Below are positions 15,992 to 51,394 of a stretch of DNA of 64,000 bases, in pieces (position 1 is the stretch's first letter; each line of letters starts with the position of its first letter). The position numbers were made by a program, and so were the translations under genes. Origin of the DNA: Hyaloraphidium curvatum SAG 235-1 (lineage: Eukaryota; Fungi; Monoblepharomycota); assembly GCA_025558095.1 (NCBI GenBank), contig JAIVFI010000038.1:62001-126000 (forward strand), written 5' to 3'. A model generated the notes under the pieces. That model was not told where the DNA came from and did not search any database. It worked only from the letters and a program-made list of their open reading frames with translations.

Positions 15992-17524
15992 TCACGCGGG
16001 GCACACCGTCTGCATCGTCACCGTCACCCCAGCCCCCCTCAGTATCCCATGTAACATCCCCACGCCGACCGTCACCAGCGCCAGCATGGCGCCGCGCAGG
16101 AACCCCAGGTCCGCGACGAACCCCAGGACCGTCGCGCGGTCCTCGCGTGCCGACGATTCGAAAACCCCGAGCAGGCGCGCACAGTCCCGCATCCGTGCGG
16201 CGTCCGGGTGGTCCGGCCGGTCCAGGAGTAGGCGGTCGAGGTCCGTCCTGCACCGTCGGTACAGAGCGGCAACGGCCGAGGTGCTCCGGTTCGCGACGGC
16301 GGCGTTGATGAAGGGCCGGAGGAAGAGGGTGCAGGTGTTGAAGATGGCAAAGAACTGCCATGCCGTGACGCACCCGGCTCCGATGATGTTGATCAGGACG
16401 GAGACGAGCACGTTGACGCCAATGAAGCCCAGCTGCAGCATCACGGACGACGTAGAGCCTTTGAAGGACCTCCACACGGGCGCCATGGCCTGGTGGAGGT
16501 ACACAAAAGGTTCAGGAGCGCGCGGCGCGGCCGTTGACGATGCCGCTGCCCCTGGAGAATCCAGTCCTGTCGATGCGACACCCCCCTCGGTCGCAGTGCA
16601 ATGTCTGGATACGAGATCCGAGAGGCAAACGGCCGCCGCCCGCGCCTGGAGCCGGCCTTCCAGGCCAATGAGCGCGAAATCCGTCGCGAACAGGTCGATT
16701 CCGTGGTTGACGACGTAGATTGCCAGGCAGGCCAGGACGTAGGCGGAAAGAGCCGCTCTCCACGGCGAGCTCCATGTCGCGCCGGCGAAGGTCACGAGCG
16801 GCGTCCAGAACTCGACGGCGCCCCACCCGAAAATGCCCACGATGCAGAGCATGGCGTACCACACGCACTGCAGCACGGCAGACTTGTGCAGGACGCGCCC
16901 GCCGCAGGTCGCGGCGGGGCACGGGCAGGGCATCCCCTTGCCTTTGCCGCCGGCGTCGTGCTCCAGGAGCTCGTCCGTCAGCCGTCCCCCCCGTGCGCGC
17001 TTCTCCAAGTCGTCCGCATCGGCGCACAAGCGGTACCATCGCAGATACGGGGCGAAAGGGTGCGTGTCCGGCGTCCTGCTTAGGGCCCGCGAGAGCCGGA
17101 GCGTGACCGGCACCCCGGCGGCAAAGATCAGCTCGTGGTAGACCAGCGCGGCCATCCCGACGGCGTAGCCGCGCGTATCAAACAGGTCCGATGCCGCGGG
17201 CAGGTTGACCATGGCGGCCGCCAGCGCGATCCTGGGGGCCGAGTAGACGAGGAAACGGGCGGCGGTGTTTGTGCCCAGCGGCGGGTTCGCGGCGACCAGG
17301 GCCAGCAGGCCGCGGTGGAAAGCGGACTTTCGAAAGGCGGCAAGGAAGTCGGCCGGCACGAGCGGCGCCGCCTCCCGCGCGCCCGCACCGGCGTCGCATT
17401 CCGGCGGGGGCGCCGCGTCGCCGTCGTACAGGGGGCGCGCCACAGCCGGCGGCGCCGAGGGCACGAGCGCCGCCCACGCCGCGCCGGAAAAGAAGGCGCC
17501 GGGGCCGTCGTCTTCGGCGGGCAT
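15992..17524 (-). CDS. Seven-TM protein, GRL/7TMIC-like family, paralogue 1
   Basis: About 7 hydrophobic segments; HD...CPC...C.G loop; YLHQAM..VW; C-terminal ATVLGFVADLGFLRGAMLALVTVGVGMLHGILRGAGVTVTMQTVCP. These motifs are shared with 42123-43658 and 49827-51394. Confidence 0.8.
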   Translation of the reverse strand: MPAEDDGPGAFFSGAAWAALVPSAPPAVARPLYDGDAAPPPECDAGAGAREAAPLVPADFLAAFRKSAFHRGLLALVAANPPLGTNTAARFLVYSAPRIALAAAMVNLPAASDLFDTRGYAVGMAALVYHELIFAAGVPVTLRLSRALSRTPDTHPFAPYLRWYRLCADADDLEKRARGGRLTDELLEHDAGGKGKGMPCPCPAATCGGRVLHKSAVLQCVWYAMLCIVGIFGWGAVEFWTPLVTFAGATWSSPWRAALSAYVLACLAIYVVNHGIDLFATDFALIGLEGRLQARAAAVCLSDLVSRHCTATEGGVASTGLDSPGAAASSTAAPRAPEPFVYLHQAMAPVWRSFKGSTSSVMLQLGFIGVNVLVSVLINIIGAGCVTAWQFFAIFNTCTLFLRPFINAAVANRSTSAVAALYRRCRTDLDRLLLDRPDHPDAARMRDCARLLGVFESSAREDRATVLGFVADLGFLRGAMLALVTVGVGMLHGILRGAGVTVTMQTVCPA

Positions 17525-17692
17525 GGTCCAATTGCATGGGTGAGCTGCGCTTAAGCCGAGCAGACGTGCCTACCAGACTCCTTAGACCTCGCAACCGGCG
17601 GTTCCCACGCGGCGCCGTCAAACTCAGAGCAGCGACCGTCCTCTCCGCTGGTGGGGGTTACGCAGACTTTGGGACGCGCGCCTGCCGCGGCG

Positions 17693-18211
17693 ATGGTCGA
17701 GTGCGCCCCCCATGAGCACGACCCGGAGAAGCGGGTGCCGCCCCACATCCGGACGCTGCCGCGGCTCGGACTCCCCCCCGACGAGCCTGCGGTGCTCGTC
17801 GCGTTGCCCTGGAGCTCGGGCGGGCTCTTCCTGGAGGTGCCCTGCCGCGGCGCGAGCTGCGGCGCTGGGCTCAAGGACGCCGTTGCGCGGGAAGTAAACC
17901 TTCCTAAGCTCTTCCGCAAACACCTGGAGCTGCGGCGGCTACCCGGCCCGGCGGCACCGCAGGAGCGCGACGTCGCCCTGCTCGACGGACTCAAGGGCGC
18001 GTGGACTCTGGCCATGCCCCGGGGGTACTTCCCCGAGAAAGTGCTTGACCGCGACCCCTTCCCCGATCCCTCGCGTTCTTTAGGACCTGGCTCCTTCATT
18101 GTCGCGGCTATCGAGCCCGAGTGGTCATGGAGGCTCATGGCTGCAGATATTGCAGCTGGCTGGGGATTCCCTGTCTATGAGCCTTGGTATGACAGGCGCT
18201 ACGGATCTTGA
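17693..18211 (+). CDS. Hypothetical protein with a possible ubiquitin-like (Crinkler-N-like) segment
   Basis: Coding-like codon bias; FLEVPCRGASCGAGLKDAVAREV loosely matches a beta-strand followed by the LKxAI helix pattern. Confidence 0.45.
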   Translation: MVECAPHEHDPEKRVPPHIRTLPRLGLPPDEPAVLVALPWSSGGLFLEVPCRGASCGAGLKDAVAREVNLPKLFRKHLELRRLPGPAAPQERDVALLDGLKGAWTLAMPRGYFPEKVLDRDPFPDPSRSLGPGSFIVAAIEPEWSWRLMAADIAAGWGFPVYEPWYDRRYGS

Positions 18212-18363
18212 AAATGTGTATTCTCGATTCACAGTGGATAGGACGGGTGTAGGAGGGCGAGTAGAGAATTTTCGCCTCGGACGGACGGGAAAGCTTCTCA
18301 GGTCCCAACCCGCAGACCACGTCATCAGTTCACAACCGACCCCACCCAACACGTTCAGACGCA

Positions 18364-18663
18364 ATGAGCCTCGCGTTTTCCGTTCTCTACAAGGGTTTCC
18401 GATACCACATTGAACTTCCTCTCCCGACGACCGCAAAGGCTCTGCGCGCCGCCGTCCGCGCTGAGCAGCCCATCCTCTTCCTGTGGCCGTTCCGGCTGTA
18501 CATTGCCGGAGCACGCCAGCCTAGGGACGACAACGAAATCTTCCGTATTACTTGGGATGAGTCGAGGCTGATACTGGACGGGGACCCCGTCCCGGATCCC
18601 GAACGGGGGCTCGTGAATGGCGTCAACATTGTAGCGGTGCCTGCTCCGGGCGGTGCGTTTTGA
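18364..18663 (+). CDS. Small protein, possible ubiquitin-like/Crinkler-N-like fold
   Basis: 99 aa: FSVLY...HIEL...TAKALRAAVRAE...FRLYI...VNIVAVP, a secondary-structure pattern compatible with a beta-grasp fold. Confidence 0.4.
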   Translation: MSLAFSVLYKGFRYHIELPLPTTAKALRAAVRAEQPILFLWPFRLYIAGARQPRDDNEIFRITWDESRLILDGDPVPDPERGLVNGVNIVAVPAPGGAF

Positions 18664-19855
18664 TGCACTCGATGTCGAAACTGATACTCATGCTTGATGT
18701 CTCCAGTGTGGGCAGTCGCGTCTTCGTTCGGGTTGCCGGCTGCGACAGCTGCCGTCGCTTTCACAGTCCGAGAAGGTCTCCCTTTTGCTATGTTCCTAGC
18801 GGCGATACTAGCGGCCGGCTTCAACGTCAACTGTGCCATCCTCGAGCTACGACGCTGGAGATGATCTCGTGGGGTTTGGGGAGAGCAGAGCGCCTTGATA
18901 GGACTCTGTGAAGGCGAGCACGATTGTTCCATTTGGAAAGAGTGGCTTTTCAGAAGATTTCCTACGTCCGCGCTCGCCGGCCCGGCATCATGTTTCCCAC
19001 CTCCATGACAATCTCGCACTCTGCTCCCTGATCTGCAGCCACGCACTCCGTGCAGCTCTGCATACATGCTTTGTGGAACACAAGCGCCTCCCATCCGTTC
19101 GTCCTTGCCGAGGACGAAAAGTTGGCCGCGGCGAAGCCGATTAGCGCGGCGCGGCCGATGAGCCGGCGCAAAGGGGGTGGATTCCAGCCCGATGAGGGGG
19201 CTGTGCAAAGCTGACGGGGCGAAAGAGTGGGGGCAGGTGATGAGGGCGTGAGCCAGAGTAGGCAGGCAGGGGAATGGTGTATGCGACTGCGGGAACGGGG
19301 CGAGGGGTTCGACCAGCTGGAATGCTGGGGAGAAAAGCGGGGCTCACCCCAATGCCGAGTGCAGCGCGCTCTCACTCGACAATGGAAGCCCTGAACCCTT
19401 AACCCGATCTTAAACAGGTACTGCTCGTGACAGAAAGCGAACCGGTGTGATTTGCCGCACTGGCTCTGGCTGGGAACGAGAGGGACCGCGTGGGCCTGCT
19501 AGGAGGAGTGAGTCCGCGGTTCAGGGTGGACGATCCGGCCCCGTCTGAGCGGCCTCCACCTTACGGTAATCGTTCCTCAAATATTCAGATGTCACTTCCA
19601 GATGGGATTCCTCCGCGATCGCCGCGATTCGCCGCGATCCGGGTTGCCGCCCTGCCCGACGCCCGAGCTAATCCTGCCCCTCCGGCGACTCAGACGACCC
19701 GAATCGCGTCCCGGACGCGTCTATCGGTCTCATTTTGGCAATGACCTGCCCATGGCTGGCGTCTTTTGCCCCAGTGACCGCGATCGGCGCGCGGGATCCG
19801 GGCACCCGTGCGCCCAGGGTCCTCGGGCCGCCGGCCCATCGCCCCGCCCTTCCCG

Positions 19856-21070: not shown

Positions 21071-21184
21071 CTTTCCGGGCGGGAGGGTGTCGGAGGGCGG
21101 GGCATGGGGTTGGCAGTGTCGATACCAACGAGAACCATAGAGAGGTCGTGTTGTTCCCCGCGCTCCCGTCCCGGAACACAACAA

Positions 21185-21815: not shown

Positions 21816-22266
21816 CGCGTCGGTCCGGCGCGGGAAAGTTCGGCCGCGGGCTCCGGCGGTGGCCCGTGCTGTTTGGCGACGGAGTTGGGGAGTCAACGGC
21901 GGGCTGCGGCAGCCGGCGTCCCCCACCAACCAAGGGTCCCTGATTCGAACTGTAATCCGGAATCCCGGGCTCAGTAGCGAGGAAATCGTCTGATGGACGA
22001 CCGATGATTGTCTGCCGATGGACCTTGCAGGCCGAGATGAAGCTGGGCATCTACCTCGCAGCAGGCTTGTCGCTGCACGCCCACGTGAGTTCCAACTTTG
22101 TAACGGTCAACTCGCTTGCCTCCCTTCATGTGCGACTTCGAGAGACCTCATGCTCGAGAACCAGAGATCGGAGATCGGGGGATTGTCTTACTGGCTTCGG
22201 ATCAGTGCACCGGCTTCCGCCACCGCGACCGCTTCGTCATCGCACGGCACCGCCCCAAAATCCGCG

Positions 22267-23943
22267 ATGGACGCCGCATTCCTCACCGCCGACGTACTCG
22301 GAAAGGTCTCTGAAGTGCTGGTCGGCGCTGGAAAGCTCGCCACGGTTGCCGCCCTCTCGTCGGCGTCCCGCGAGCTCAGGCGCCTCCTCCTCCCCGTGCT
22401 CTTCCGCCGTCTCGCCGTGGGCCCGCGCGTCCCGGTCTCCACGTGGCGCTCGGTGCTCGATGCCTTCGGAGGGAAGGAGCTGCCCGTGGTTTCGCTCCGC
22501 ATCGATGTCCCGCTGCCGCCCGGGAGCATCGCGGAAGCCATCGCGGGGGAGCGCCGCCACCTGCAAGCCTGGCACGCAGTGATCCGTGACCTCCTCGCCT
22601 CGTGCGCGTCGCTCAAGGATCTCGAGATCGTGATGCCGCCGGAAACGACCGACCACCTCAGCGTGAAGCAGATCATGACCGCGCCTCCCGAGCTCGTGGA
22701 CGCCATGGCCGATCCTTCGGGCGTGTTCCATTTCCCCTCGCGGGACGAAGTTAAGGACATCAGGGAAGCGCTGGCGAACATGGGAGCGAGGCCGGCGTTC
22801 GAGCTGGCCCTGCCGCGCGGTCTGGACCGCTTCTCCTTCTCGTGCATCGCGGCGGACGACGCCGTCAACGTCTTCCGGGCTGTTGCAGGGTCCACTGGAA
22901 TCGGAGAATGGGGCTACTCGGGGCCAGTGCTCGATCTGGACCTCTACGGGGGCTTGTCCGCCTTCCGCCCGGCCGTGTCCTCGCTGACGTCGGCCTCCTT
23001 CGCCGGCCGCCCCTTCAACGAGTACGACCCGAGGAGATCGGCGAGCGAAATGCTGGACACCATCGAAGCGTCGCCGCGGCTGCGCAAGCTGGCCGTCGAT
23101 CACGTGTTCCTCGGCACGGCATCTCTTGCGAGCCCGCGTTTCTCGTTCACGCTCAAACAGCTCGACGAGCTCCGTTCCCTGTCTGTGTGCGCCATCGGGA
23201 TCCCGCAAGGAGTTGCTCTGTGGCCTGGGAGCTTGCTACGGTGCCTCGAAGGCTTCGAGATCGCATTCGGAACGGACAACGACGAGACGCAGGACGGCCT
23301 GGAGCTCCTCGCGAGCCTGCGCCTCAGCCCGAACTTCGAGCTCGTCGTGGAAGATTCCGTGATGACGGGCCACGTTTTACGTCGCACGGTCTCGTCGTCG
23401 GCCCTGAGGAACCTGAAGGTCATGGTGTCGATGCAAGGGCTCCCGGGGCGACTCGCGCTGCTCGTGCGGGGTCCGCTTCCCCGGGACCTCCGCCGGCTCA
23501 CCATCGACGTGCTCGCGATGGCCGACATCTACCAGGACTTTGCAACCGAGGTGCTGCGGGTCGTGGACCGCGTCGCCTTCGCCCTTGTCTCGCGCGGATC
23601 GCTCCCCGAAGGTCTCTCCGTCCTGCTCGACATCCGATCCATCGTTCGCAGCGAGCTGGAGCACCTCGTCGACAAGGTTGCGCTCGAGTGGGACCCGTCG
23701 CGCGGCGTGTTCCGCCGCCTCGCTTGGGAAGGCGCCGGCGACCGCACTCCGCTTCCGATCGAGGTGGGCACCGGGTTCTGCGCATCTTGCGGCAAGCAGC
23801 TCGTCGGCACCAGATTCGTTTGCTCCGGGTGCAGGAGCGAGAGGTACTGCGGGGGTCAGTGCCAGAAGAAGGCGTGGGTTGCCGGTGGGCACAAGAGGTT
23901 CTGCGCGGCGATCAGGTCGGGGCACGGTGTGCTGTCGGACTAG
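22267..23943 (+). CDS. MYND zinc-finger protein with an F-box-like N-terminus and LRR-like middle, paralogue A
   Basis: C-terminal CASC...CSGC...YCGGQCQKKAW...HKRFC; N-terminal LTADVLGKVSEVL...ALSSASRELRRLLLPVLFR. Confidence 0.85.
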   Translation: MDAAFLTADVLGKVSEVLVGAGKLATVAALSSASRELRRLLLPVLFRRLAVGPRVPVSTWRSVLDAFGGKELPVVSLRIDVPLPPGSIAEAIAGERRHLQAWHAVIRDLLASCASLKDLEIVMPPETTDHLSVKQIMTAPPELVDAMADPSGVFHFPSRDEVKDIREALANMGARPAFELALPRGLDRFSFSCIAADDAVNVFRAVAGSTGIGEWGYSGPVLDLDLYGGLSAFRPAVSSLTSASFAGRPFNEYDPRRSASEMLDTIEASPRLRKLAVDHVFLGTASLASPRFSFTLKQLDELRSLSVCAIGIPQGVALWPGSLLRCLEGFEIAFGTDNDETQDGLELLASLRLSPNFELVVEDSVMTGHVLRRTVSSSALRNLKVMVSMQGLPGRLALLVRGPLPRDLRRLTIDVLAMADIYQDFATEVLRVVDRVAFALVSRGSLPEGLSVLLDIRSIVRSELEHLVDKVALEWDPSRGVFRRLAWEGAGDRTPLPIEVGTGFCASCGKQLVGTRFVCSGCRSERYCGGQCQKKAWVAGGHKRFCAAIRSGHGVLSD

Positions 23944-23990
23944 ATGCCACTGTAGCCGAATGAAGTTCTGCATTCAGATCATTGCTCGCA

Positions 23991-25409
23991 TCATCCCGTC
24001 GACGTCGCGGAGTTCCAGGACGTGTCGCCGAACTGCCGCTGCGGCTCGTGCTCCCTGTTGTACAGCCGGCACGCGCGCAAAAGAACCAACCCGAGCGGAT
24101 CCCACCGCTCCACGCGTGCAATCCACTCTCTAGGAACCGCCGCCAGCCCGTACATGGCCCCGACGATCTGCCCCGTTATCGCGGTGGTCGTGTCCGCGTC
24201 CCCGCGCATATTGGCGCACTTCAGCATCGCTTCGCTCGGCGAGCCGGCGGTCCACGCGCAGTGCAGTGCCATCGCGAGGGCGTCCATGGCGTACGAACCG
24301 ACGTACCCGGGCTGTGCACGCGCGCGGGAGGGGCTGAAGCGATATGAGGGGGCGCGCCAGCGCCAATCGCGGTCCTCGAGCTCGGCGGAGGCGTTCGACG
24401 CGTGGCGATCCTCCTGCATCGACGCCGCCAGGCACTGCACGCTGTACAGCGGGGATTCGAAGGAGCCCGGCAGCGCGGCAAGGGCCGATTTGGGTTCCAG
24501 GCCCTCGCAAGCGGCATCGATCGACGCCAGCATCACGTAGACCATGAGGCGGCAGCACTCGGCCGCCTCGTCGCCCTGGTGCGTCGTCTTGGACTGCCAA
24601 TATGCGAGCGCCATGGCGTCGTCGTACCGGCGCCTGCGCTGCGCGGGCGTCTCGCCGGCCGGAGCCCGGGAGAAGAAGACGGCCGCGGGGGCAAGGCGCA
24701 TCAGCGAGCCGTTGCCCGACGTGTCGCGGTCGCCCGCCCCGGTGAACATGGTCTCCCGCTGGAAGAACTCCTCGAAGCTCGCGCCGATGTTGCCCCCGAG
24801 CCCGACCGAGCTCGCGACCGCACGCTCAGGGTCGTATCCAAAGGCGTTGCAGTAGCCCAGGTGCCACCAGAGCACAAAGCGGAGGCGCAGATCGTGCGGA
24901 TCCAGCCTGCCGCGGGCCATCAGGCTCTCGGCGAAGCAGAGGGCCATCGACGCGTCGTCGGTCCACTGGCCGGGTTTGAGCTGGAAGCGGTTGCAGCCTT
25001 CTCCGCGCCACGTGGCTTCGTCGAAGCCCGCGAGCCGCGGCTGCGCGGTCGGGTCGTAAGACACGACGCGGAACTCGAGCGGCGCACCGAGGGCGTCCCC
25101 GACGACCAGGGCGACGAGCGTCGCCACGGCGTGTCGCTCCCGCGTATCTCCGTCCGCAGCAAAAAGGCGGCGCCGCACCGCGTCGCTCCTCTCGCGCAGC
25201 TGCCCGTCGCTCTCGCCGGACCGCAGGAGCGAAACGCGCGCCAGCGCGTCGGGCCGCCACGCGTGCCGCCGAGCTCGGAGCAGTCGCGTGCCGTCCGGGT
25301 GCACGAAGAGTGAATGAATCTCCGCGTCGCTCGGTGCTGGCATCGCAGCCAGGATCTCCGCGGCACTTCTTTTGCGCTTGTCTGCACGGCGCGATTGTTC
25401 TTGGCCCAT
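23991..25409 (-). CDS. ADP-ribosylglycohydrolase (ARH/DraG family)
   Basis: VGDALGAPLEF, GQWTDDASMA, SGNGSLMRLAP, SKTTH, RGDADTTTAITGQIVGAMYG. N-terminal MGQEQS fits a myristoylation signal. Intronless. Confidence 0.92.
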   Translation of the reverse strand: MGQEQSRRADKRKRSAAEILAAMPAPSDAEIHSLFVHPDGTRLLRARRHAWRPDALARVSLLRSGESDGQLRERSDAVRRRLFAADGDTRERHAVATLVALVVGDALGAPLEFRVVSYDPTAQPRLAGFDEATWRGEGCNRFQLKPGQWTDDASMALCFAESLMARGRLDPHDLRLRFVLWWHLGYCNAFGYDPERAVASSVGLGGNIGASFEEFFQRETMFTGAGDRDTSGNGSLMRLAPAAVFFSRAPAGETPAQRRRRYDDAMALAYWQSKTTHQGDEAAECCRLMVYVMLASIDAACEGLEPKSALAALPGSFESPLYSVQCLAASMQEDRHASNASAELEDRDWRWRAPSYRFSPSRARAQPGYVGSYAMDALAMALHCAWTAGSPSEAMLKCANMRGDADTTTAITGQIVGAMYGLAAVPREWIARVERWDPLGLVLLRACRLYNREHEPQRQFGDTSWNSATSTG

Positions 25410-25622
25410 TTCCAACTGGCCCCCACTCTCGTTTCTAGGCTTCGGCGCGTTGATTTGCTTGTTTGCGTCGACTAAACAACAGACGCGGATCAAGTCAGGG
25501 CAGGGCAGGAGAGCTGCTGCATTCGGATAATCGCTTTCATCATGAGCGCCATAGATTCGTTCGACGCCCGGTTTCCGCGGGTCGGGCCAGCGAGTGTCTG
25601 ACCGACTCCGCGATAGTTCGAA

Positions 25623-26722
25623 ATGGCGCCGAAGCAGCCGACCCCGTCGCGGGCCGAGCTGCTCTCGCGCATGATCGACGCGGTCAACGACGACGACCCC
25701 GCGGCGCTGGGCGCGCTGTCGACGCGGGCGGCGCGGCGGCCATCGACGAGCGCGACGAAGATTCGTTCGCCTTGCTGCATACGGCGGCGTACAACGACCG
25801 CCCGCGGTGCGCGGCGCTGCTGCTCGACCGCGGCGCAGACATCGAGGCAAAGACGGCGTACGGCGAGACGCCGCTGGTGGTCGCGAGCATTTACGCGCCG
25901 CGCGTGGCCGAGCTGCTTTTGGATCGCGGCGCGCGCCCGGACGTGCCCGACAAGTGGGGCAACACCGCCGCACGCCGCGCGGCCGAGGGCGGCTTCAAGG
26001 GGCCCCCCAGGGGCGATCCGTCGCGGGCGAAGTTGGTGGCGCGGCTGAAGGAGGCCGAGGCAAAGGCAAAGGCCAGGCTCAGGGACGACTGGGACGGCAG
26101 GCGCGAGGCGGCCGACGCCCTGCGCGCCAGGGGCAACGCCGAGTTCCGCAGGGGCAACCCGGCGAGGGCGTTGGAGCTGTACCGCGAAAGCCTGGAGCAC
26201 ATGCAGGACGCGCGCGTGTTCAACAACATGGCAGCGGCGAGGCTGCAAATCATGCTGGCGGAGGAGCGGAGCGCAGGGAGCATGACGCGCAAGGCGTACG
26301 AGGGCTTCTTCAGGGCCGTGAACGACGCCGGCAAGGCCTCGCGGATGGATCCGACGTCGGTCAAGGCATGGTACCGCATGGCCAGGGGCTACATGGGCTA
26401 CGGCGACTTTCTCCGGGCCCTGGCGCACCTCAAGGACGGCCTCGAGCACTGCCCCGGCGACCCGGAGCTGACCAAGCTCGCGGCGGAGCTCAAGGACCTC
26501 GGCGTCAAGGACGGCATCTCGAACCCCCTGTCGCCGGCCGCCCCGCGGCTGCGCGCGCTGCTGGATGCCGGGGCGAGGAGCTCGCCGTGCGCGTGGTGCC
26601 AGGGGCCGCTCGCGGAGCCGCTGGCGCAGTGGGAGGGGTGCTGCCCGTACTGCGCGATGGACCCGCCCGACAAGGTGGACAGGGCGAGGCTGGACGGGCT
26701 GCGCTTGGGCAAGGCGTGTTGA
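25623..26722 (+). CDS. Ankyrin + TPR protein with a C-terminal Cys cluster (apparent 1-nt frameshift near 25718)
   Basis: LLHTAAYND...GADIEAKTAYGETPL; ADALRARGNAEFRRG TPR; KAWYR; CAWC...CPYC. The ATG-25623 frame joins the main frame only if one base is added at CTG^TC GAC. Confidence 0.8.
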
Positions 26723-31353: not shown

Positions 31354-33015
31354 CTACCCGCGACGCACGCCGAGCCCAGATCGGATTGCAGAACACCTCC
31401 TTTGGTGACCACCCTTGAACCAAGCGCTCTTCTGGCAGTCCCTGCCGCAATACTTCTCGCTCTTGCACCCTGAGCAGACGAACCTGCTTGTCGCCTCCAG
31501 CTGCTTGAGGCAGGTGGCGCAGAATCCGTTGCCGACTTCGATCGAAACCGCCCTGCGGTCTCCCGATCCCTGCAACGCCAGCCGGCGGAAGGCACCGAGC
31601 GACGAGTCCCATTCCGACATCGCGCGGTCGAGGAGGTGCTCGGCCGATTCGCCCGGGAACACCCAACGCACGTCGAGGAACACCGAGAGACCTTCGGGGA
31701 GCGGTTCCCGCGAAAGCACGGCGCAAGCGATCAGGTCGACGGTGCGCGGCACGCGAGAGTAAAAGTCCGGGTGCATGTGGTTCATGGCCGCGACGTCGAT
31801 GTTCAGCCGGCGGAGATCCCAAGGGAGAGCGCCGCGGACGACCAGGGCGACCTTGTTGAGCTCGTGCATCCACACCGTCACCCTGAGCTGCTGCAGAGAC
31901 GACGACGCGAGAATCGACCTCAGGTTGGGTTCCATCATCACGGAGACATCGACTGTGAGCTCGAAGTTCGGACCGAACGTCGCGGCCGCGACTCGGCGTA
32001 CGGCGTCCCCCAATTCTTGGGAGTCCGCGAACATCGCCTGGAGCTGAAGTCCAGCGAAGCTTTGAATCAGCTGCGTGGTCCACGAAGAGGAGCTTTCCAC
32101 AAAGTGATCGGCTTGAATCGACCACGAGCGGAGATCTTCCAGCCTGCTCAGCGTGGGTATGAACCGCGGATCCTCGATCAACACGTTCCCGAGGCGCACA
32201 TGGTGGATGAAAAGCTTTTGCAACCGAGGGCATGAATCAACCAGATCGAGTATTCCGCCCGCGGCCCTCCTGGCCATTTTCGGATGGCACCCGACATCAA
32301 AGGAGGCCGCAGTGAGAGTCGAGGGGAAGTAGCCCATGCCGGTGTCCAAAACGGGTCCCGAGTAGCTCCATTCCTTGATCGTTGCGGAGCCCGCCACGGC
32401 ACCCACGATGTTGACGGCGTCCGGCACGGCGATGCAGGCGATCGCGAAGCGGCTCAGACCCGGCGGAAGCACGAGCCTGGCACTCGGCCTCCCCCCGCTC
32501 TCCTCCAAAGCTTTCCGGATGAGCGCAGCCTCGCTTTTCGACGGCAGTTGGAACAGCTCATCGGGGCCGTTCGCCATGAAATCGCCGATCTCGGGAGGCA
32601 CCGAAGCAATGATCTCCACGTTCATGTGGTTGGAGACAGGTACGGGTAGGACGACTTGGAGATCCTTGAGCGACGAGCAGGAGTCCAGGAGGTCGCGGAT
32701 CACGGCGTGCCACGCCTGCAGGTGCCGGCACTCCGCCGCGATGGCTTCCGCGAGGCTCCCAGACGGCAGCGGGACTTCGATGTGGAGCGACAAGACAGGC
32801 AGCTGCTTTCCTCCGAATGCATCGAGCACCGAGCGCCACGTGGAGGCGGGCACGCGCGGGCCCACGGCGAGACGGCGGAAGAGCACGGGGAGGAGGAGGC
32901 GCCGCTGCTCCCGGGACGCCGACGAGAGCGCGGCAGCCGTGGCCAGGGTTCCGGTGGCGACAAGCACTTCCGAGACCTTTTCGAGGACGTCGGCGGTGAG
33001 GAGTGAGGCGTCCAT
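31354..33015 (-). CDS. MYND zinc-finger protein with an F-box-like N-terminus, paralogue B (inverted relative to A)
   Basis: MDASLLTADVLEKVSEVL...; CATC...CSGC...YCGRDCQKSAW...HQRRC; colinear with 22267-23943. Confidence 0.85.
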   Translation of the reverse strand: MDASLLTADVLEKVSEVLVATGTLATAAALSSASREQRRLLLPVLFRRLAVGPRVPASTWRSVLDAFGGKQLPVLSLHIEVPLPSGSLAEAIAAECRHLQAWHAVIRDLLDSCSSLKDLQVVLPVPVSNHMNVEIIASVPPEIGDFMANGPDELFQLPSKSEAALIRKALEESGGRPSARLVLPPGLSRFAIACIAVPDAVNIVGAVAGSATIKEWSYSGPVLDTGMGYFPSTLTAASFDVGCHPKMARRAAGGILDLVDSCPRLQKLFIHHVRLGNVLIEDPRFIPTLSRLEDLRSWSIQADHFVESSSSWTTQLIQSFAGLQLQAMFADSQELGDAVRRVAAATFGPNFELTVDVSVMMEPNLRSILASSSLQQLRVTVWMHELNKVALVVRGALPWDLRRLNIDVAAMNHMHPDFYSRVPRTVDLIACAVLSREPLPEGLSVFLDVRWVFPGESAEHLLDRAMSEWDSSLGAFRRLALQGSGDRRAVSIEVGNGFCATCLKQLEATSRFVCSGCKSEKYCGRDCQKSAWFKGGHQRRCSAIRSGLGVRRG

Positions 33016-33298
33016 CGCGGAGGTGTCGTTGGTGTTGAGCGATGACGAAGCGGTCTTTGTTCGACAGAAGCCCGGCCTTCCATCTTGACAGAACTCACTC
33101 GACAGCTCAATTGAGCCAGAACTCGTCCGAGGACAATATGAAGAAGAGGACCAACCCAATCAGAGCGTAGAACGTGCAAAGTTGGGGTCTCTGGAGTACA
33201 TGGGATGCTACCTCTCGTCGGATCCACGGGGCGATAGAAGCGTCCTGTTCCGGCCCCCTTAACTGGTCGAAACACAGCAGCAGGTGCCGCTGCTCCAC

Positions 33299-41764: not shown

Positions 41765-42122
41765 TTCTGCACAAAGCAGACGAGGAAGCAGATATCCCGG
41801 GAAGTGTAGGATCAGAGCAGGGAGACCTACAGTCGATACGAGTCCGCCACGGGCCATCTGAGTAGACGTCCCTTGACATTGCTCTTTTGACTTTGCCCCC
41901 ACCGTTGTTTGCTCCGTCGATCGCGGCGGACGCGACGCGATCGTGGGGGGCGCGAGCTAGCGCCAGTGGAGGGCACTCAATCGCATTTGTAATCGGCGGC
42001 GAGCCCGACGTGAGCATGCTCGTTTTGTTCTTTCAAACTCTAGTCGGTCCGTCCCGTTCGCGGAAGAGCAGGTGGGCGGGAAAAGCCAACTCCAGTTCTT
42101 TCCTCCGCCGGCCCGTCCGACG

Positions 42123-43658
42123 ATGGCGCCCGCTGCCGCCTCTTCCTTCACCGGCGCTGAATGGCTTGCACTTTTCCCTGCCGCTACCGAGCCCCGGCCG
42201 GCGCTGTCGGGCGAGGCGCCCCCGCCGGACCCCGCTGGACCCGTCCGCCTTGCGCTGCCTCTGACGGCCGCGACGCTGCTCGACGCACTCTCCCCGTTCC
42301 CCGCTTTGCGACGATTCACGCGTCTGCAGATGCTGCTGAGCCCGTGGGCGGTGCGCGCGGGCATCAGGCACGCCGCCGACTTCGTTGGGCGCACCCCGCT
42401 GTTCCTCCTCATTTGGTCCTTCAACGATGGGCGATTTTCGACGCACAACCTCGCGGTGGGCACGGCCGCGGAGCTCTTTGCGTTCTTGTTCGTCCTGCCG
42501 GCTATACTGGGCGCCGGCGGGCACAAGGGTATGAGGACAGGCCTTCGCGAAGCCCCGACAAAGGAGGGGGAGCTCGAATGGGACAGCCACTGGCTCGCGG
42601 GCTTCATCAGATGGCGTCAGCTGTTTGCCGGTGAGGAAGGGCCGGGGCCCGTAAGTCTGGTGCAGCACGATCCCACGGATCCGCTCTGTCCGTGCGAGGC
42701 GGAGACGTGCGCGGGTTCGCTGTTCGCCCACCCCGGAGCGGCGAGGATGGCTGATGCCGTTTTGAAGGCCTTCGTCACTGGAGTTATCGGCTGCTTCTTT
42801 GTCAATTGGTCCGTCTTGGTTCTCGGCTCCTTTTGGACCTCGGGCTGGGGCCCAGCACTAGCGGTCGTGTCGTGGGTCGCGATCCTAAACTGCTATCCGG
42901 TCAACTGGCTTATGCTACCCCGGCAATCGATTGCGTGCTTGAAGCTCTCTTCGCGCCTGCGCAACCGGGCGGCGTTGCTGGCCATGGCGAACCTCGTGCG
43001 CCGGTTCGAACCACTCATTTCAGGAACTACCTGGACATCTCCGCACGATTTTGACGGCACGAACCTGTACTCGGAGCTGCACGATAAGCTGACGCACGTC
43101 TGGGAAACGCGTTTCCACTACTGGTCGGACTCGATTGCCGCCATGCTGTTTTCGGTCGCGTGGATGATCGTTCCGTGCATCATCTTTGCGGTAAGTCTGT
43201 CGCCCGACGCGGCCAGGTTCCTCCCTGCTTACCTGCGATGCGGGCAGGTGGGCTCCTACTGCATCCCGTTCCATGCAATCATGATGATCCTCTTCCTCCT
43301 TTGGGGCGCCCTCTCGGACCTCACGGTGATGGCCGCCTCAAACGCCGAGATCACGGCCGTCTGCGCTGCCTACCACCGCGCGCGGATCGAGCTCCGCCGG
43401 CTCGCGGTCCGTGCGGCCGAGTCCCCCGACGCCGAGCGCCTGCGGCCCGTCGCTGAGGCGCTTTCGAAGCACGATGCGCTGCTGAGCGCCTACATGGATG
43501 GCGACAGGTACAAGGCCAAGTACGCTGGGTTCACGGCAGACTACTCGACCGTGCGGACGGTCGCGGCTACGCTCTTCACCGTCGCCATCGGCACGTTCAC
43601 GCTGCTCAGGGGGGTTGGGGTGTCGTTCACGATCGAGTCGGTGTGTCCAGGCACCTGA
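42123..43658 (+). CDS. Seven-TM protein, GRL/7TMIC-like family, paralogue 2
   Basis: HDPTDPLCPCEAETCAG; YSELHDKL..VW; AASNAEITAVCAAY; KYAGFTADYSTVRTVAATLFTVAIGTFTLLRGVGVSFTIESVCP. In-frame intron 43191-43247. Confidence 0.82.
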   Translation: MAPAAASSFTGAEWLALFPAATEPRPALSGEAPPPDPAGPVRLALPLTAATLLDALSPFPALRRFTRLQMLLSPWAVRAGIRHAADFVGRTPLFLLIWSFNDGRFSTHNLAVGTAAELFAFLFVLPAILGAGGHKGMRTGLREAPTKEGELEWDSHWLAGFIRWRQLFAGEEGPGPVSLVQHDPTDPLCPCEAETCAGSLFAHPGAARMADAVLKAFVTGVIGCFFVNWSVLVLGSFWTSGWGPALAVVSWVAILNCYPVNWLMLPRQSIACLKLSSRLRNRAALLAMANLVRRFEPLISGTTWTSPHDFDGTNLYSELHDKLTHVWETRFHYWSDSIAAMLFSVAWMIVPCIIFAVSLSPDAARFLPAYLRCGQVGSYCIPFHAIMMILFLLWGALSDLTVMAASNAEITAVCAAYHRARIELRRLAVRAAESPDAERLRPVAEALSKHDALLSAYMDGDRYKAKYAGFTADYSTVRTVAATLFTVAIGTFTLLRGVGVSFTIESVCPGT

Positions 43659-44037
43659 CGGCCCAATAGTAGCACGCAGACAAGAGCGAGGTCACCGCGG
43701 GCGGGACGAGTCGGTAGCAAGGAAGTGCAAGATAGCCTTCCGTCTTCGCGCATTCTCAAACAGATGAGATTCATGTTCGAGCCATAACCCGCCTCTGGAG
43801 CAACTGCCACGGAGAAGTCCGCCCGGCCTGGAAACGCAGTCCATTTCCCCGCCGCAAGGGTGGCTGCCGGTGAACCGGACGGACACGGCGATATTCCACG
43901 AATGCCTCGGCAGCTCGAAAAGCACGATCGATTCTGACTCGGCCAAGCTCAAAGGCCTACAAGCGGAGCGACCAACATGCCAAGCACCAGCGACGTGGCC
44001 AAGTGCCCACGAAGAGAGAGTCCCACCCACTACCCAT

Positions 44038-45127: not shown

Positions 45128-45313
45128 GTCGACGGTGCGAGCCGATGCTCGACGGAGAGAAGCGCGGCCTCCTGTGCTAGGTGCTGTGCGCCGAATGCGA
45201 GGTTGCCGCGCAAAAGGGCTCGCCGCGTTCAACCGCCCCGAAGTCCAAGCCACATCGGGACCCGGATCGCAACGGAATCGTTTTCTTTGTCAAACTCTTT
45301 CTCTCTTCATGCC

Positions 45314-47739
45314 TCAAATCCGCGACTCGACCACCTGCCGCACAAGCACGTTCCTCGGATCCACCTGCAAAGTCGTCTTAGGATCGAAGCCCACTTCATT
45401 TTCATTGTCCATCAGCATCGGAGCGACGGGCACGACCTGATCGAATCACTTACCAATATCGTCCCAAGCATCCCTGGCCTCCTCCGGCGTCGGCGCCTTG
45501 CCCCCGGGAAACACGTGCCCGTGGTTTCGCATCCAGCGCTGCTCCGAGTACAGCGCCCCGCCGACCTCAAACACGCGGCCGGTGATCCCTGTGTTGTCCT
45601 TGCTGCAGACGTAGACGACGAGGGGCGAAATCAATTCCTGGGGAGCGATCGGGCATCAGCCCCCGAACGACATCTCGATCGCCCGGTGGAATTGGTTACC
45701 GGAGTCCAACGGGAAATCTCCTTCAGGTCCATTCCCGGGATGGTCGTGAGCATCCTCGTGCCGGCTTGCGGGCACAGCGCGTTGATGAACACGTTCTTGC
45801 GCTTGAAGAGGGGAGCCAAGGCCCTGACGAAGCTAGTGAAGCACTCAGCCCCCGAGCAACCAGCGATCGGGCCATTGAGGCGACCACCCACCCGACCGTC
45901 GCGTTCTTGGCGGCGCTGTAGTTCACCTGCCCGAAGTTTCCGTACGTCCCGCTCGCCGACGCCGTGCAGAGGATCCTGCCGAACCCCTGCGCGGACATAT
46001 GCGTCCACGCGGCGCGGACGGCGCGCTGCATCCCGTGCACATGGACCTCCTGGATGAGCTCAAAGTCCTCGTTGGTCATGCGGGCCAGGCTCTTGTCGCG
46101 GAGGCTGCCGGCGTTGCCTGGCGACGGCGATCAATTCCCGCCCGACGGCCCGCGCGGAAGAGACACCCACTGACGAGCACATCCACCCTGCCAAACTCCT
46201 TGATCGCCTGCTCGATGATCTTCTCGCCGGCCTCCTCGACCCTGGCGAAGTTGGGCACGGCCCGCGGGGCGCCGAGCGCGCGCGCCTCGTCGCAGACCTT
46301 GTTCGCCACGGATTCGTCGACGCCGCGGCCGTTGACGTCGGCGCCGGGGTCGTTCAGGACGAGCGAGGCGCCCAGGCGGGCAAAGAGATGGGCGTGTGCG
46401 CGGCCGATCCCTGGACGGATCGTGGCAGGCATTAGAAAAAAAAGCTTGGCGGCACCGGCCCGTCATACCATTGCCTGCGCCGGTAATCACCACCACCATC
46501 CCCTTGAAATCCGGCTCCGGCTTGGGCTGCTTGACCATCAGCACCCTCGCGCTCGCGGACTTGCCGCTCCTGACCGCCTCGACCAGGTCCAAGATCGCCT
46601 TGTTGTCCGGCGGCTGCGTGGGGTAGTCGAAGGCAGAAAAGTCTTCCACCTGGTTCCAGGCGGAGGCGACGGCGCCGGGGGTGACGCGCTCGTTGCCAAT
46701 CACGGCGCCGTTGCTGCGGGCCAGCTTGAAGGCCCCAGCTGCGGAAAGATGGGTCACGTCAAGACGAATTGCAAAAGGCTGGAACTGCGGACGACGTACC
46801 GTAACCGCCGCCGACGTTGAGGATGGCGCCGCCCGCCTTTGTGCAGGACGGGTGGACGGCGTAGGCCACCACGCCGGCGACCTTGTCCGGCGTCAGCGTG
46901 TTCCTCTGCCCCGCGTCCCCCGGCAGCTGCTCCGTGAGCCTCGTCGACGCCGCCGGGCACAGGACGGTGACCTTGATCCCCTTTGGCGCGCCCTCCTTGC
47001 CCGCCGTCAGGCCGATCCCGATCACCGCGGCCTTGGCGGCCGAGTACTCCGAGAGGTTGGCGGTGCCGAAGACGCCAGCGGCCGAGGCGGTGACGACGAC
47101 GCGGCCGCCGCCGGACTTGGCCGACTCGGCGAGGTGGGGCCAGGCTGCACGGAGGACGGCAAAGGTGCCGAACACGTGGACCCGGTAGACGCGCTTCCAC
47201 TGCTCGAGGTCCACGTCGTCGTACTTCTTGTAGACCCCGATCCCGGCGTTCGCGATCACTGTAGGGGAGCGAGACGGTTGGCATGGGTTCCGAGGCTTGT
47301 AAGAGTCTCGTACCGATGTCGATCCGGCCCCAAGCGTCCATGGCCTGCTTCACCATCGCGTCAGCGCCGTTGGGTGCCGCTGCCGTCACGTCCTCGGCAT
47401 TTGGCAGGGCTTCGCCGCCCGCCGCGTTGATCTCGGCCGCGACGCGTTCAGCGGCGGAAGTGGAACGGGGTCCTTCGCCCGAGATGCTGCCTCCGTAGTC
47501 GTTGACGAGCACCCTGCAGCCCCGGGAGCCGAGGAGAAGGGCATATTGGCGGCCGAGGCCCGAGCCAGCACCACTTTGGGGGCGGAAATGGCGCCGGGGA
47601 GAGAGGGGAGACGCCGCGGGAGACACGACACGAGAGACGCTCCGGATGAGAAACTGCGGTCGGAGTGACCCGGATCGTCCCACGTGATGATTGCTACGCG
47701 CTTTATTCCGTCCGAATCCCAGCGCAGCTGGCTGGCCAT
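45314..47739 (-). CDS. FOX2/MFE-2-like tandem (3R)-hydroxyacyl-CoA dehydrogenase (two SDR domains, no hydratase domain)
   Basis: IIT|GAGSGLGRQYA (intron 47574-47683), VNDYGG, NLSEYSAAK; second domain VITGAG..IGRAHA, VLNDPG, GNFGQVNYSAAK. Several more introns; the last exon ends in PTS1-like SRI. Confidence 0.87.
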
Positions 47740-48285
47740 TGTGGGAACGGTGAGGGAGCGGCTTCCAAGCAGTGGCGATCGGGCGCAACCATAAACGAAG
47801 AAGACCGCTCAACCAGACCTCTCATCTCTCATCGCACACTTGCAGCACGATGCTGAAAGAGAATACTGGAATGCGCATCAAGGAGGACGAGCTGTGCTGG
47901 CTGCTGATGGCTTCTGGTTACATCTTTCGGCACCTTGATTACGTTGACCCCGTTGCCTGTGTCCATTGCATCTCCCACCAATCCAATGAGGTGGATCAAT
48001 GTCTTCCTGATCTATGACAATCCAAAATGGATCAGACCTGGGATGTGGGTGACGGTGGGGGACAGCAGCGATGGCCGTGCGTCGGATCGGGCGCGCCAGT
48101 TTACCCCTCCTTCGCTTTTCGGCCGCTGCCCCCACACCAGCAGAGGTCCCGCTGCCGCCGGTACCTTGTCGTCCGCTTCTTTTGGGCTCTGGAACAGCGG
48201 CCGCTTGAGTGCTGCAGGCCGCCTTTGCCGGCCGCGCTGCCCGAGGACTCCGTCGCTTCCATCTTCTTCCCGACCGCTCCCCCCG

Positions 48286-49053
48286 ATGGCGACCGCCGTG
48301 CGCAAGGAAAAGACCTTTGGCACGCTCGGCAAGCCCGGCCAGGCTTTCAAGGATGAGAGCCTGGAGGACTTCCTGAAGGACTTTACGAGCAGTGTGACCA
48401 CATCGGCGGTCGTGTCGGTCAAGGAGGGCAAGGCCAAGTACCTCAAGGACATCCCGGGCGGCGGCGACCTGGAGCGCCAGCTCAAGAAGAAGGCCGTCGA
48501 GATTGGCGCCCCGCTGCCGCCGCCCGATGCGTTTGTCGAATCGGCCGAAGCCAAGGCCCGCGAGAACATCCCCGAGGCCTGGCCCGAGCTGGACCATCCC
48601 GTCTTCCAGGTCTCGGAGCGGGAGCTGAGGCAGGCCGAGGAGAAGGAGGCCAAGGACAACGCGTCCGTGTTTTCCAAGACCGCATCCTCGATCCGCTCCA
48701 AGATCACGCAGAGCAAGCAGAACGGCGTGTCCGACCTCCCCGGTGGCCTGCTCATCGCCGACGCCAAGCAGAAGCGCGAGGCCATCGGTCGCCAGGCGCT
48801 GAACGCCTCCAGGGCGAGGAGGGCCTGGGACACCGTGCGCACGCACGTGGACTCGCCTGTCGCGATCATTTTGAACAATCAGCGGGCAGGTTCTGGCCCC
48901 GTGGTGGAGCCAGCAACCGAAAGGGACGAGGCGCTCCCGGTGCCGGAAGCGCCAAAGATCGATCCCAGGGAAGCGTTCTACCTGGCGGCGATCGAAGCGC
49001 ACGAGAAGGAGAAGGCGAAGGAGAAAGGGGCGGGGGAGAAGGAGGCTTCCTAG
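48286..49053 (+). CDS. Hypothetical charged protein (255 aa)
   Basis: Strong GC3 codon bias from ATG 48286; no family recognised. Confidence 0.7.
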   Translation: MATAVRKEKTFGTLGKPGQAFKDESLEDFLKDFTSSVTTSAVVSVKEGKAKYLKDIPGGGDLERQLKKKAVEIGAPLPPPDAFVESAEAKARENIPEAWPELDHPVFQVSERELRQAEEKEAKDNASVFSKTASSIRSKITQSKQNGVSDLPGGLLIADAKQKREAIGRQALNASRARRAWDTVRTHVDSPVAIILNNQRAGSGPVVEPATERDEALPVPEAPKIDPREAFYLAAIEAHEKEKAKEKGAGEKEAS

Positions 49054-49120
49054 ATTGTTGGTGTCTTGCTAGATCATCTCTGCGTGTGTGTACACTAAGT
49101 GTGGGATTCGTGCCACTTTT

Positions 49121-49648
49121 TCAGACTCTGATCCGCAGCTTCCACTTGACCTTCTTCCACCGCAGGACTGCCATCAGCATCCCACCAATCAGCCACATCC
49201 CTGCCATGAATCCGAGCACGGGCCGGTAATCCGCACCGACGCGCTGGCCGTCCACGTAGATTGTGTTGGCGTCGATGATCGAGCCACATATGGCCGTCCC
49301 AAAGGCCTCTCCGGGAAAGAACGAGAGATAGAGCACGCCAACGACGGCACCCAGATTGTCAATTCCAAACTCGATCACGGCCAGGATCGGCATCCCGACC
49401 AGGGGCGTCCCGCAGAAGAGAGCCCACAGCATCGACGCCGCGATCGTGGTGGCCAAGTTCGTCGGAGCCGGCAGCCATATGAGGCTGGTGGCTAGGAAGG
49501 GCACGGCGCAGGCCAGAATCCACATGTTGATCTCGCCAACTCGGTCCGTGAAGAAACCGCCGACAATCCTTCCCAAAGCAACCGTTGCCGAAAACGCAGC
49601 GACAAGTGCTGCTCCCGTCGCATTCGAGTATCCTCCATCGCGCAACAT
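49121..49648 (-). pseudogene. C-terminal half of an MFS monocarboxylate-transporter-like gene
   Basis: ALGRIVGGFFTDRVG (MFS loop motif) and about 5 TM segments. An in-frame stop lies just upstream and only about 180 nt separate it from the next gene, leaving no room for the N-terminal half. Confidence 0.6.
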
Positions 49649-49826
49649 CAGAGGGCTTTGAACGGATTCGGCCCCATTTGCTCAATTATTCTGATCATGT
49701 GCGTCCGCGCTCCGAAAGCCCAGTGCGTCAGGCGATCCTCGCGAGCTTTCCAAATTGTGCATTTAGCAAAATCGGTCGACCATCTGATCTCTCGTTTGTT
49801 GGTGTAGCCTTCCCATCGCCTCACAA

Positions 49827-51394
49827 TCAGCAAACGCTTTCCAGGGTAACAACTACACCGACTGCCCTAAGCACGCTGAAGGCCGCAAACCCCGCGGTCA
49901 GCACAGCCCCAACGACTGCTCTCACCGTATTATACCCAACCTCGAACCCCAGGAATCTCGCGCGTGTCTGCGTGCTTGCGTACGAGGAGAGCACTTCGGC
50001 ATGTCGGGATAGATATCGCGCTGTTTTTGCTGTTTCGGATGAAGACGCAGGATGAGAGGGGTCGTCGAGGGATGCAGCTTGTTCGCGGAGGTACTGTGCT
50101 GCGCGGGTGTAGATGGCGCAGACGGCGTTGACGCCTGCGTTGAAATCCGCGACGAGGTAGAGGTCGCGCAGGCGGATGTAGATCTCCCGCGCCATGTAGG
50201 TGAGGAGCCACGCGGGGAGGCAAGACGACATCGCCTGGAGGGTTGGCAGGTAGGTTGAGGAGAGATGGAGTGGATTTGCGTAGACGAATCACGTACGATT
50301 TGAATCACGAGAGCCACGACGATGAATAAAGATGATGCAATGACTCCCCACGGGATGAAGCTTGTCACGCCCCGCTCGACGGTCCAGCTAGCTGCTAGAG
50401 CTGCTTGCAGCGCAAAATAGTCATTGTCCGTGGCAGGTGCCTTTTCCTCGACAGACTCAGACTTTCCGCCGCCAAGATGGCCTTCCTCAGCTCGGTCCAT
50501 TAACGGCTGCAGAGCAGCGTACACGGCCCGAAGCCTGGCCCTCCCGCGCAGAGCCGAGCCCACGGTCACAGACAGATATGTCGACGACGAAGCTGCCCAG
50601 ATAATCCCAACCAACATGGCTATCGTGCCCGCGGACGCGGCGCCAGGGCTCTTCCAAGTGCTCGAGCCGGTCGAAACCAACGGTGTCCAAAGAGAAAACA
50701 GAAAGACCAGCAAGGTGAGCACGAACCAGACAATCCGATGAAACCAGATGGTCCCTGCCGCAGCGTCCAGCAGCATCCCGCAGCACTTGTCGCCGGGACA
50801 CGGGCATGTTGGATCGCCGTCGACATGGGCGAGAAGCTCGGGGTTCATTTCGACAGCCTGGGCCCAGCGCACGACACTCTCGAGATACGTTTCCGCGCTT
50901 TGTTCACCATCGACAAAGACAAAGGGGAAGCAAGGACTCCATACTTTGCGGAGTAGTGCGTCCAATAGGGAACTGGCGCGTCGGGCTCCCCAACGGAGCA
51001 CCACGAAGGCTGTCAGCCCGATGCTGTAAAACACGTTCAATGCCAGGAACATGGAAAAAGAGGCGTAGAAGGCGGCGAGGCTCCTGGCGGACCGCGGCGC
51101 GAGGTCGGCCAGCGCGGTACAGGCCAACGCGGCGGCGCCAAAGGCCAGGGCCACGGCGAGGCTCCACTGGAAGGCGATACCGCGGGCGGCGCTCGGCAGC
51201 AGCGCGGTACGGAAGCGCGGGAAGCGACGCAGACGGGACAATGCGGCCGCGTACCCGAACGGCACTCGAAGTTCTTTCGCCGGATCGGTGTCGAGGCGCC
51301 GCGCCCAGCGGTCGCCGTCGGACGGCGCTGACGACGGGAACACCGCCAGCCACAGCGCCGGCTCAAAGACCGGAGATCGCGTCTCGCTCGACAT
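49827..51394 (-). CDS. Seven-TM protein, GRL/7TMIC-like family, paralogue 3
   Basis: HVDGDPTCPCPGDKCCG; YFALQAAL..SW; ADFNAGVNAVCAIY; RFLGFEVGYNTVRAVVGAVLTAGFAAFSVLRAVGVVVTLESVC. Intron 50235-50296 is at the equivalent position to that in paralogue 2. Confidence 0.82.

Follow-up and report, generated by a model that had tools for sequence, protein, structure and literature searches.

A several-hundred-member gene family with a predicted 7TMIC fold in the fungus Hyaloraphidium curvatum

To our knowledge, a role as ligand-gated channels has been established for proteins of the seven-transmembrane ion channel (7TMIC) superfamily in insects only, and the relatives that we know of from plants, protists and fungi occur in small numbers per genome, without known function. 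Proteins of the 7TMIC type have been reported from chytrid fungi as SpunGRL1 and SpalGRL1 (Benton et al. 2020, PMC7746228), with a single gustatory receptor-like (GRL) gene in Spizellomyces species and 4-12 DUF3537 genes in plants (PMC7746228); structure screens later found 7TMICs in Chytridiomycota and Blastocladiomycota. The Class-B (PHTF-like) representatives combine the stereotyped 7TMIC with a long intracellular loop 1 (IL1) located between transmembrane segments TM2 and TM3 (Himmel et al., 10.1101/2023.08.30.555482; Benton and Himmel, PMC9998090). The present analysis concerns a stretch of 64,000 nt (hereafter the window) from the genome of Hyaloraphidium curvatum SAG 235-1, an atypical non-flagellated fungus (PMC8371127) placed in Monoblepharomycota. 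The window covers positions 62,001 to 126,000 of contig JAIVFI010000038.1 in assembly GCA_025558095.1 (C38:62001-126000), and all coordinates given without a contig prefix are positions of the window. Three of its genes are members of one H. curvatum family of about 300-450 genes, which, in the reading that best accounts for the evidence presented below, would have the 7TMIC fold known from insect odorant and gustatory receptors, animal GRLs, and plant DUF3537 and PHTF proteins.

Three paralogous genes and their exon structure

A preceding sequence-only reading had assigned to this family three open reading frames (ORFs) of about 500 amino acids (aa), located at 15992-17524(-), 42123-43658(+) and 49827-51394(-) and designated here as genes 1, 2 and 3. 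All three reading frames are present at these coordinates; the part that required revision was their structure, given that gene 3 is not a single ORF but is split in two exons by a GT..AG intron of 62 nt, and gene 2 holds a probable in-frame intron of 57 nt. The proposal that the genes are strongly diverged paralogues was upheld by BLASTP, with gene 3 exons searched and aligned singly: gene 1 aligned with gene 2 from end to end (E = 4e-28, 27% identity), whereas gene 2 matched exon 2 of gene 3 with E = 2e-19 (35% identity) and exon 1 with E = 5e-6, the latter alignment being centered on the HD..CPC..C motif. These protein alignments, lying far past chance, confirmed the three genes as true paralogues. 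Every one of the ordered motifs listed in the sequence-only reading can be found in the three-way alignment, where they coincide with columns conserved family-wide. The features of the three genes are as follows.

15992..17524 (-): gene 1, intronless and uninterrupted ORF of 510 aa, stop codon within these coordinates
16904..16927 (-): C-P-C-x4-C part of the gene 1 motif, with the His further upstream than in the canonical spacing
42123-43658 (+): whole ORF of gene 2, uninterrupted, 511 aa when read straight through
42123..43190 (+): gene 2 exon 1, cytoplasmic N-terminal region, TM1-TM5 and IL1 with the H/C motif
42666..42710 (+): gene 2 IL1 motif H182-x3-D186-x2-C189-P-C191-x4-C196, codon-pattern match, candidate cytoplasmic zinc site
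43191..43247 (+): probable intron of gene 2, 57 nt, GTAAGT...CAG, in-frame, phase 0, coding for 19 residues
43248..43658 (+): gene 2 exon 2, Cys of extracellular loop 3 (EL3), TM6 with its cytoplasmic extension, TM7a, hairpin linker, TM7b and the ...VCPGT end, stop included
43338..43496 (+): gene 2 residues 406-458, TM6 cytoplasmic extension and TM7a, predicted inter-subunit (anchor) surface
43542..43613 (+): gene 2 residues 474-497, TM7b, most conserved TM helix and candidate pore-lining helix
49827..50234 (-): gene 3 exon 2, 135 codons and stop, with EL3 Cys, TM6, TM7a and TM7b, ending ...ESVC
50235..50296 (-): gene 3 intron, 62 nt, GTACGT...CAG, phase 0, read from the DNA
50297..51394 (-): gene 3 exon 1, 366 codons from the N-terminus through the end of TM5, aligning with the family columns
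50783..50827 (-): gene 3 H/D/C-x-C/C motif, codon-pattern match

The canonical H-x3-D-x2-C-x-C-x4-C spacing is thus found in only two of the three window genes, the H-to-C distance in gene 1 being longer.

The public gene model P0001 is identical to gene 2 across 42123..43190 and removes 43191-43247, at which site most paralogues show a gap. In the family alignment the introns of genes 2 and 3 occupy the same position, and five of the 67 uninterrupted family ORFs are longer by 19-22 residues at this very site, after TM5 and before the EL3 cysteine; each insertion opens with V (GTN), closes with Q (CAG) and looks like an in-frame intron read through. Because the public model splices the stretch, the gene 3 intron coincides with it and these five ORFs possess insertions there, comparison of the sequences identifies the TM5/EL3-Cys site as a conserved phase-0 intron site, and the mature gene 2 protein probably consists of 492 aa. 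Direct read-through of gene 2 yields the family-conserved C-terminus. P0001 swaps the last 16 residues of gene 2 (RGVGVSFTIESVCPGT) for 39 unrelated ones by the removal of 43608-43667, a stretch without a GT start; since the family-invariant G499 and C508 are lost in this way, the C-terminal end of P0001 is probably an annotation error.

Predicted topology, conserved residues and fold

Family-averaged hydropathy revealed seven hydrophobic segments in proteins of 490-511 aa, the TM2-3, TM4-5 and TM6-7 loops being long. Among 67 members, the mean number of Lys and Arg residues (K+R) was 6.9 in the N-terminus, 7.9 in IL1, 9.6 in IL2 and 8.6 in IL3, compared with 0.6, 0.33, 0.21 and 0.16 in EL1, EL2, EL3 and the C-terminus, respectively. 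The inner loops IL1, IL2 and IL3 have mean lengths of 76, 71 and 66 aa, and the outer loops EL1, EL2 and EL3 of 7, 14 and 8.5 aa. According to the positive-inside rule, the N-terminus is therefore predicted to be inside and the C-terminus outside, in agreement with the N-in topology expected beforehand.

AlphaFold2 models built with the paralogue alignments reached a mean predicted local distance difference test score (pLDDT) of 89.7 and a predicted template-modeling score (pTM) of 0.90 for gene 2, and 88.1 and 0.88, respectively, for gene 1, with the same helix layout in both. In the gene 2 model, TM4 and its extension span residues 243-264 and 270-300, TM5 with its preceding extension 315-356, TM6 with its extension 383-433, TM7a 437-457 and TM7b 474-497. 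TM4-6 reach into the cytoplasm in both models, TM7 is split into a cytoplasmic and a membrane helix, and the long inner loops IL1, IL2 and IL3 form helices, prolonging TM4, TM5 and TM6 under the membrane. The linker of 16 residues between TM7a and TM7b of gene 2 forms a small hairpin, which corresponds to the GF..D/G element noticed earlier. Hydropathy and the two models thereby bear out the anticipated layout of about seven TM segments with long loops after TM4 and TM6, and the split TM7a/TM7b after the GF..D/G hairpin appears in the modeled helix layout as well.

Conservation is distributed unevenly along the protein. In a set of 161 non-redundant members, used for all residue frequencies that follow, the mean frequency of the most common residue was highest, among TM helices, in TM7b (0.57) and lowest in TM1-5 (0.26-0.33); a conserved pore and anchor is the pattern described for 7TMICs (10.1101/2023.08.30.555482). 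TM7b has the consensus R-T-x3-T-x2-T-x3-G-L-W-S-x-L-R-G, and its residues T479, T483, T486, G490 and S493 form a one-sided stripe flanked by R478 (93%) and R496 (89%). About 45 conserved residues, including F...EWLALFP, are located at the N-terminus. H182, C189, C191, C196, C380 and N407 are each 99% conserved, and C508 96%. The quartet H182/C189/C191/C196 in the cytoplasmic IL1 is probably a structural zinc site. N407 lies at the inner end of TM6. C380 belongs to EL3 and C508 to the outer C-terminus; both lie on or beside the only two three-residue strands of the models (380-382 and 501-503), and these two cysteines probably form a disulfide at the outer face. Such an arrangement, with the zinc site on the inner and the disulfide on the outer side, agrees with the predicted topology.

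The structure comparison that had been proposed with the sequence-only reading, namely AlphaFold models matched by Foldseek against insect receptors, placed chains of odorant (Or) and gustatory (Gr) receptors first. The top Foldseek matches for genes 1 and 2 were BmGr9, AaegOR10, Gr43a, MhOR5 and AgamOR28, with probabilities up to 0.99. When the two models were aligned exhaustively with 48,161 representative PDB chains, all eight Or/Gr representatives were within the top 9 for gene 2 and the top 8 for gene 1; their alignments span all seven helices in order (model residues about 46-499), the helix-by-helix equivalence resting on the aligners and not on the model coordinates. Unrelated PDB matches ranking after Or/Gr cover just 60-180 residues of the 4-helix cytoplasmic bundle. 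The ESM Atlas shape search listed a PHTF1/2 cluster first (template-modeling score 0.51 by query, 360 residues aligned), and clusters of 400-aa echinoderm and cnidarian proteins scored level with or above it (0.54-0.57 by query and 0.67 by target); a chlorophyte TM family was also returned (0.54). The language-model neighbors of the two genes, with feature similarities of 0.88-0.93, include DUF3537 clusters (4 and 7 of 30 matches, at 0.91-0.93) and, for gene 1, also 7tm_7 and Trehalose_recp clusters. Taken together, the Or/Gr structures at the head of the PDB matches of both models and the PHTF, DUF3537 and 7tm_7 neighbors from the Atlas and language-model searches are in favor of the 7TMIC/GRL-like fold suggested by the sequence-only reading, and the modeled family very probably belongs to the 7TMIC fold and superfamily.

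Seven hydrophobic segments would equally be expected of a G-protein-coupled receptor (GPCR) or of another N-out seven-helix receptor family, and one of the language-model neighbor clusters is automatically named G protein-coupled receptor. That cluster carries 7tm_7 and Trehalose_recp domains, and hence represents a gustatory-receptor family; moreover, the K+R distribution gives an N-in, C-out orientation, which is the wrong topology for a GPCR, and no GPCR chain is among the 50 best matches of the wide structural search for either gene. Such an identity is highly improbable.

Several observations weigh against the 7TMIC assignment. The Foldseek E-values are weak (0.013 and above) and the corresponding template-modeling scores are low (0.23-0.43). 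No relevant Pfam family, including 7tm_6, 7tm_7, Trehalose_recp, DUF3537 and PHTF, was detected in the three genes or in the 67 members even at E <= 10, and the family profile searched against PDB sequences gave two chance-level matches and no Or/Gr. Searches of the genome with PF12056 and PF08395 returned nothing, which says little, as the control queries did not match either. Finally, the Gr TM7 motif TYhhhhhQF does not occur in the TM7b consensus, which has no Y or QF at the expected spacing. Many accepted 7TMICs are likewise without sequence-profile similarity to a known member family (PMC9998090).

These points leave room for a lineage-specific multi-pass membrane family that merely converged on the 7TMIC helix layout, for example a zinc-dependent membrane enzyme, a transporter or a scaffold built around the His/Cys3 loop. 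Such convergence would be in line with the want of any sequence-level tie to a 7TMIC family, with structural scores that are middling for helical proteins, and with the position of the most invariant residues (H182, C189, C191 and C196) in a cytoplasmic loop without insect-receptor counterpart; a TMEM39 (Tmp39) cluster is also among the close language-model neighbors. Set against this, two independent models of paralogues sharing 27% identity both retrieve every Or/Gr representative on top with all seven helices in order, whereas unrelated structural matches are confined to the 4-helix cytoplasmic bundle, and the topology, loop lengths, split TM7, TM7b conservation peak and predicted anchor contacts (see below) all fit 7TMICs. 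TMEM39 was rejected as a candidate, being a language-model neighbor only and not present in the Atlas shape search, and PAQR- and DHHC-type zinc membrane proteins were rejected for want of a structural or Pfam match. We consider convergence unlikely. The family is best regarded as a separate branch of the fold superfamily, to be filed neither as Gr nor as Or; the exclusion from Gr follows from the lacking TYhhhhhQF motif.

Family size and genome dynamics

The large lineage-specific expansion in a basal fungus that the sequence-only reading had suspected from three copies turned out to be right but understated. In the 31.9-Mb genome assembly, the codon pattern of H-x3-D-x2-C-x-C-x4-C occurs 313 times, compared with a single occurrence of the reversed control. 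Tblastn, in which the best 84 of 600-700 first-look candidates were scored per search, gave at least 92 matches with gene 2, located on most contigs and nearly all uninterrupted across query residues ~2-509, and at least 87 matches with gene 1, of which about 40 were at loci new relative to the gene 2 search. A profile hidden Markov model (HMM) of 67 members, searched against 1.84 billion cluster representatives, matched 474 distinct proteins at E <= 1e-3, a number that falls to 423 with a cutoff of 1e-10 and to 308 with one of 1e-30; the ten matches sampled between rank 1 and rank 150 were all H. curvatum hypothetical proteins. A word-indexed homology search, whose prefilter of 8000 candidates was swamped, returned three to four H. 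curvatum proteins when queried with one protein or with the alignment, and says nothing on other taxa. From these counts, the true family size is estimated at about 300-450 genes, or roughly one per 100 kb, and it is likely that the 7TMIC assignment and the large expansion hold jointly.

Within the window, tblastn with 191 family proteins detected no further copies besides the three genes. The C-P-C-x4-C codon pattern is also present at 7544-7567(+) and 26133-26156(-), outside the family genes, and the same search ruled out both sites as family members.

Family copies share 27-40% identity at the protein level and, on this measure, are old. Another copy was found at a distance of <=20 kb for 59 of the 100 listed motif sites, versus 32% expected, and local arrays of members are located at C1:703987-716717, C5:783992-816963 and C12:711230-714454. 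Some copies are near-identical neighbors: the 45-nt motif sequences at C10:808980 and C10:813173 are identical and lie on opposite strands, which suggests a very recent inverted duplication. Around the member at C43:319780-324261, the left and right flanks of 1.4 kb have in common several segments of 60-240 nt with 90-96% identity, pointing to a local repeat or duplication. By contrast with what would be expected of transposon cargo, the flanks of 30 family loci have almost no DNA in common; we therefore interpret the family, from its sequences, as cellular genes spreading by local duplication and old divergence and not as a mobile element. Local duplication with old divergence is the way in which chemoreceptor families grow.

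The number of copies, and the many long spurious ORFs present in this genome, could nevertheless raise the suspicion that the genes are non-functional, namely ORFs that are open by chance in GC-rich DNA, or else cargo or remnants of a repeated mobile element. This is contradicted by copies which, at 27-40% identity, retain invariant residues and intact frames, with nearly all matches free of internal stops, by the conserved phase-0 intron site, the confident AlphaFold2 models and the existence of public gene models, and transposon cargo was rejected on account of the unshared flanks. The probability of a non-functional origin is practically negligible.

The other genes of the window provide an ordinary context. 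The gene of an ankyrin-repeat protein (14366-15961(+)) is convergent with gene 1, about 27 nt separating the two stop codons, and the window also encodes an LCAT-like acyltransferase (5219-7153(+)) and an ADP-ribosylglycohydrolase (23994-25973(-)); all three are ordinary eukaryotic genes, none of them functionally linked to the family. In addition, two ORFs of ~600-640 aa, at 22018-23940(+) and 31357-33159(-), each possess a terminal MYND zinc finger (Pfam E about 1e-7) and no other domain match; situated about 8 kb apart, they may be paralogues.

Possible function and comparison with known systems

Oligomerization was modeled with ESMFold2, without alignment, for four copies of a truncated construct (gene 2 residues 262-511). 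The interaction prediction score from aligned errors (ipSAE) was 0.50 versus 0.00 for the best control, a value to be read with the truncation, the pLDDT of 46-53 and the position of this assembly outside the calibration of the tool. Of the 30 calibration proteins with structures solved as pairs of one chain, 21 attained this ipSAE mark, as did none of the 23 with structures solved as single chains. At least 38% of contacts were common to the runs, with partner pLDDT of at least 46. In the predicted assembly, the TM6 extension (411-437) of each copy contacts TM7a (442-463) of one neighbor, while its own TM7a contacts the other neighbor. The surface formed by the TM6 extension and TM7a is the 7TMIC anchor contact described in the literature (10.1101/2023.08.30.555482), and the head-to-tail ring of the model, which is supportive only, is what an anchor domain would give.

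On the proposed mechanism, an anchor bundle of TM6 extension and TM7a would hold four subunits together, the central pore would be lined by the strongly conserved TM7b, which bears the Thr/Gly/Ser stripe on one side, and the poorly conserved TM1-TM5 would form a variable ligand pocket. A variable pocket combined with a conserved pore leads us to infer that the repertoire could consist of ligand-gated channels sensing many different chemicals. A family of at least 300 members, in which TM1-5 are the most diversified and the pore and anchor helices conserved, carries the evolutionary signature of a chemoreceptor repertoire, here in a non-motile unicellular fungus, and may have a chemosensory role.

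Three considerations tell against the functional part of this proposal. The four-copy result, obtained with a truncated construct at low pLDDT and outside the calibration, may also reflect memory of solved Or/Gr tetramers; we know of no non-insect 7TMIC that has been shown to be a ligand-gated channel; and Arg is conserved at either end of TM7b, which sets the family apart from the cation-selective insect channels. A multimeric, channel-type receptor function is put forward as a tentative prediction with slightly less than even chances. The full proposal is more doubtful still: a broad chemical sense provided by an independently built repertoire of several hundred ligand-gated tetrameric 7TMICs, each with a new IL1 module in the cytoplasm that zinc would stabilize, in which Arg at the TM7b ends might alter ion selectivity. 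Ant odorant-receptor sets are similar in size to such a repertoire.

The family makes it testable whether 7TMICs outside animals act as chemosensory channels, and how hundreds of them could be used by a microbe without the usual behavior. Most copies are intronless and about 500 aa long and are thus suited to heterologous expression, and the invariant His/Cys3 and Cys-Cys residues offer handles for mutation. Within the library searched, we found no paper connecting Hyaloraphidium to 7TMICs and none describing an expansion of such size. Outside animals, no 7TMIC expansion larger than this family of at least 300 members is known to us.

Compared with insect Or/Gr (Orco, MhOR5, AaegOR10, AgamOR28, BmGr9, Gr43a and Gr64a), the H. 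curvatum proteins show 6-10% identity in structural alignments and no 7tm_6/7tm_7 profile match. They differ from these receptors in the absence of TYhhhhhQF, and in the possession of ~45 extra conserved N-terminal residues, an IL1 of 76 aa in which the His/Cys3 motif is invariant, one likewise invariant Cys each in EL3 and at the C-terminus, and a 16-residue hairpin linker between TM7a and TM7b; their host is a unicellular fungus. The long IL1 (76 aa) would fit the PHTF-like Class-B 7TMICs, and a PHTF cluster heads the Atlas list, in which echinoderm and cnidarian clusters score at least as high; the H. curvatum proteins are much shorter than PHTF (about 500 versus about 800 aa) and have no PHTF Pfam domain match. 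Finally, as regards chytrid GRL and the DUF3537 proteins of plants or algae, DUF3537 clusters rank among the closest language-model neighbors of both gene 1 and gene 2, and in contrast to the copy numbers of chytrid GRL and plant DUF3537, the H. curvatum genome holds at least 300 copies.

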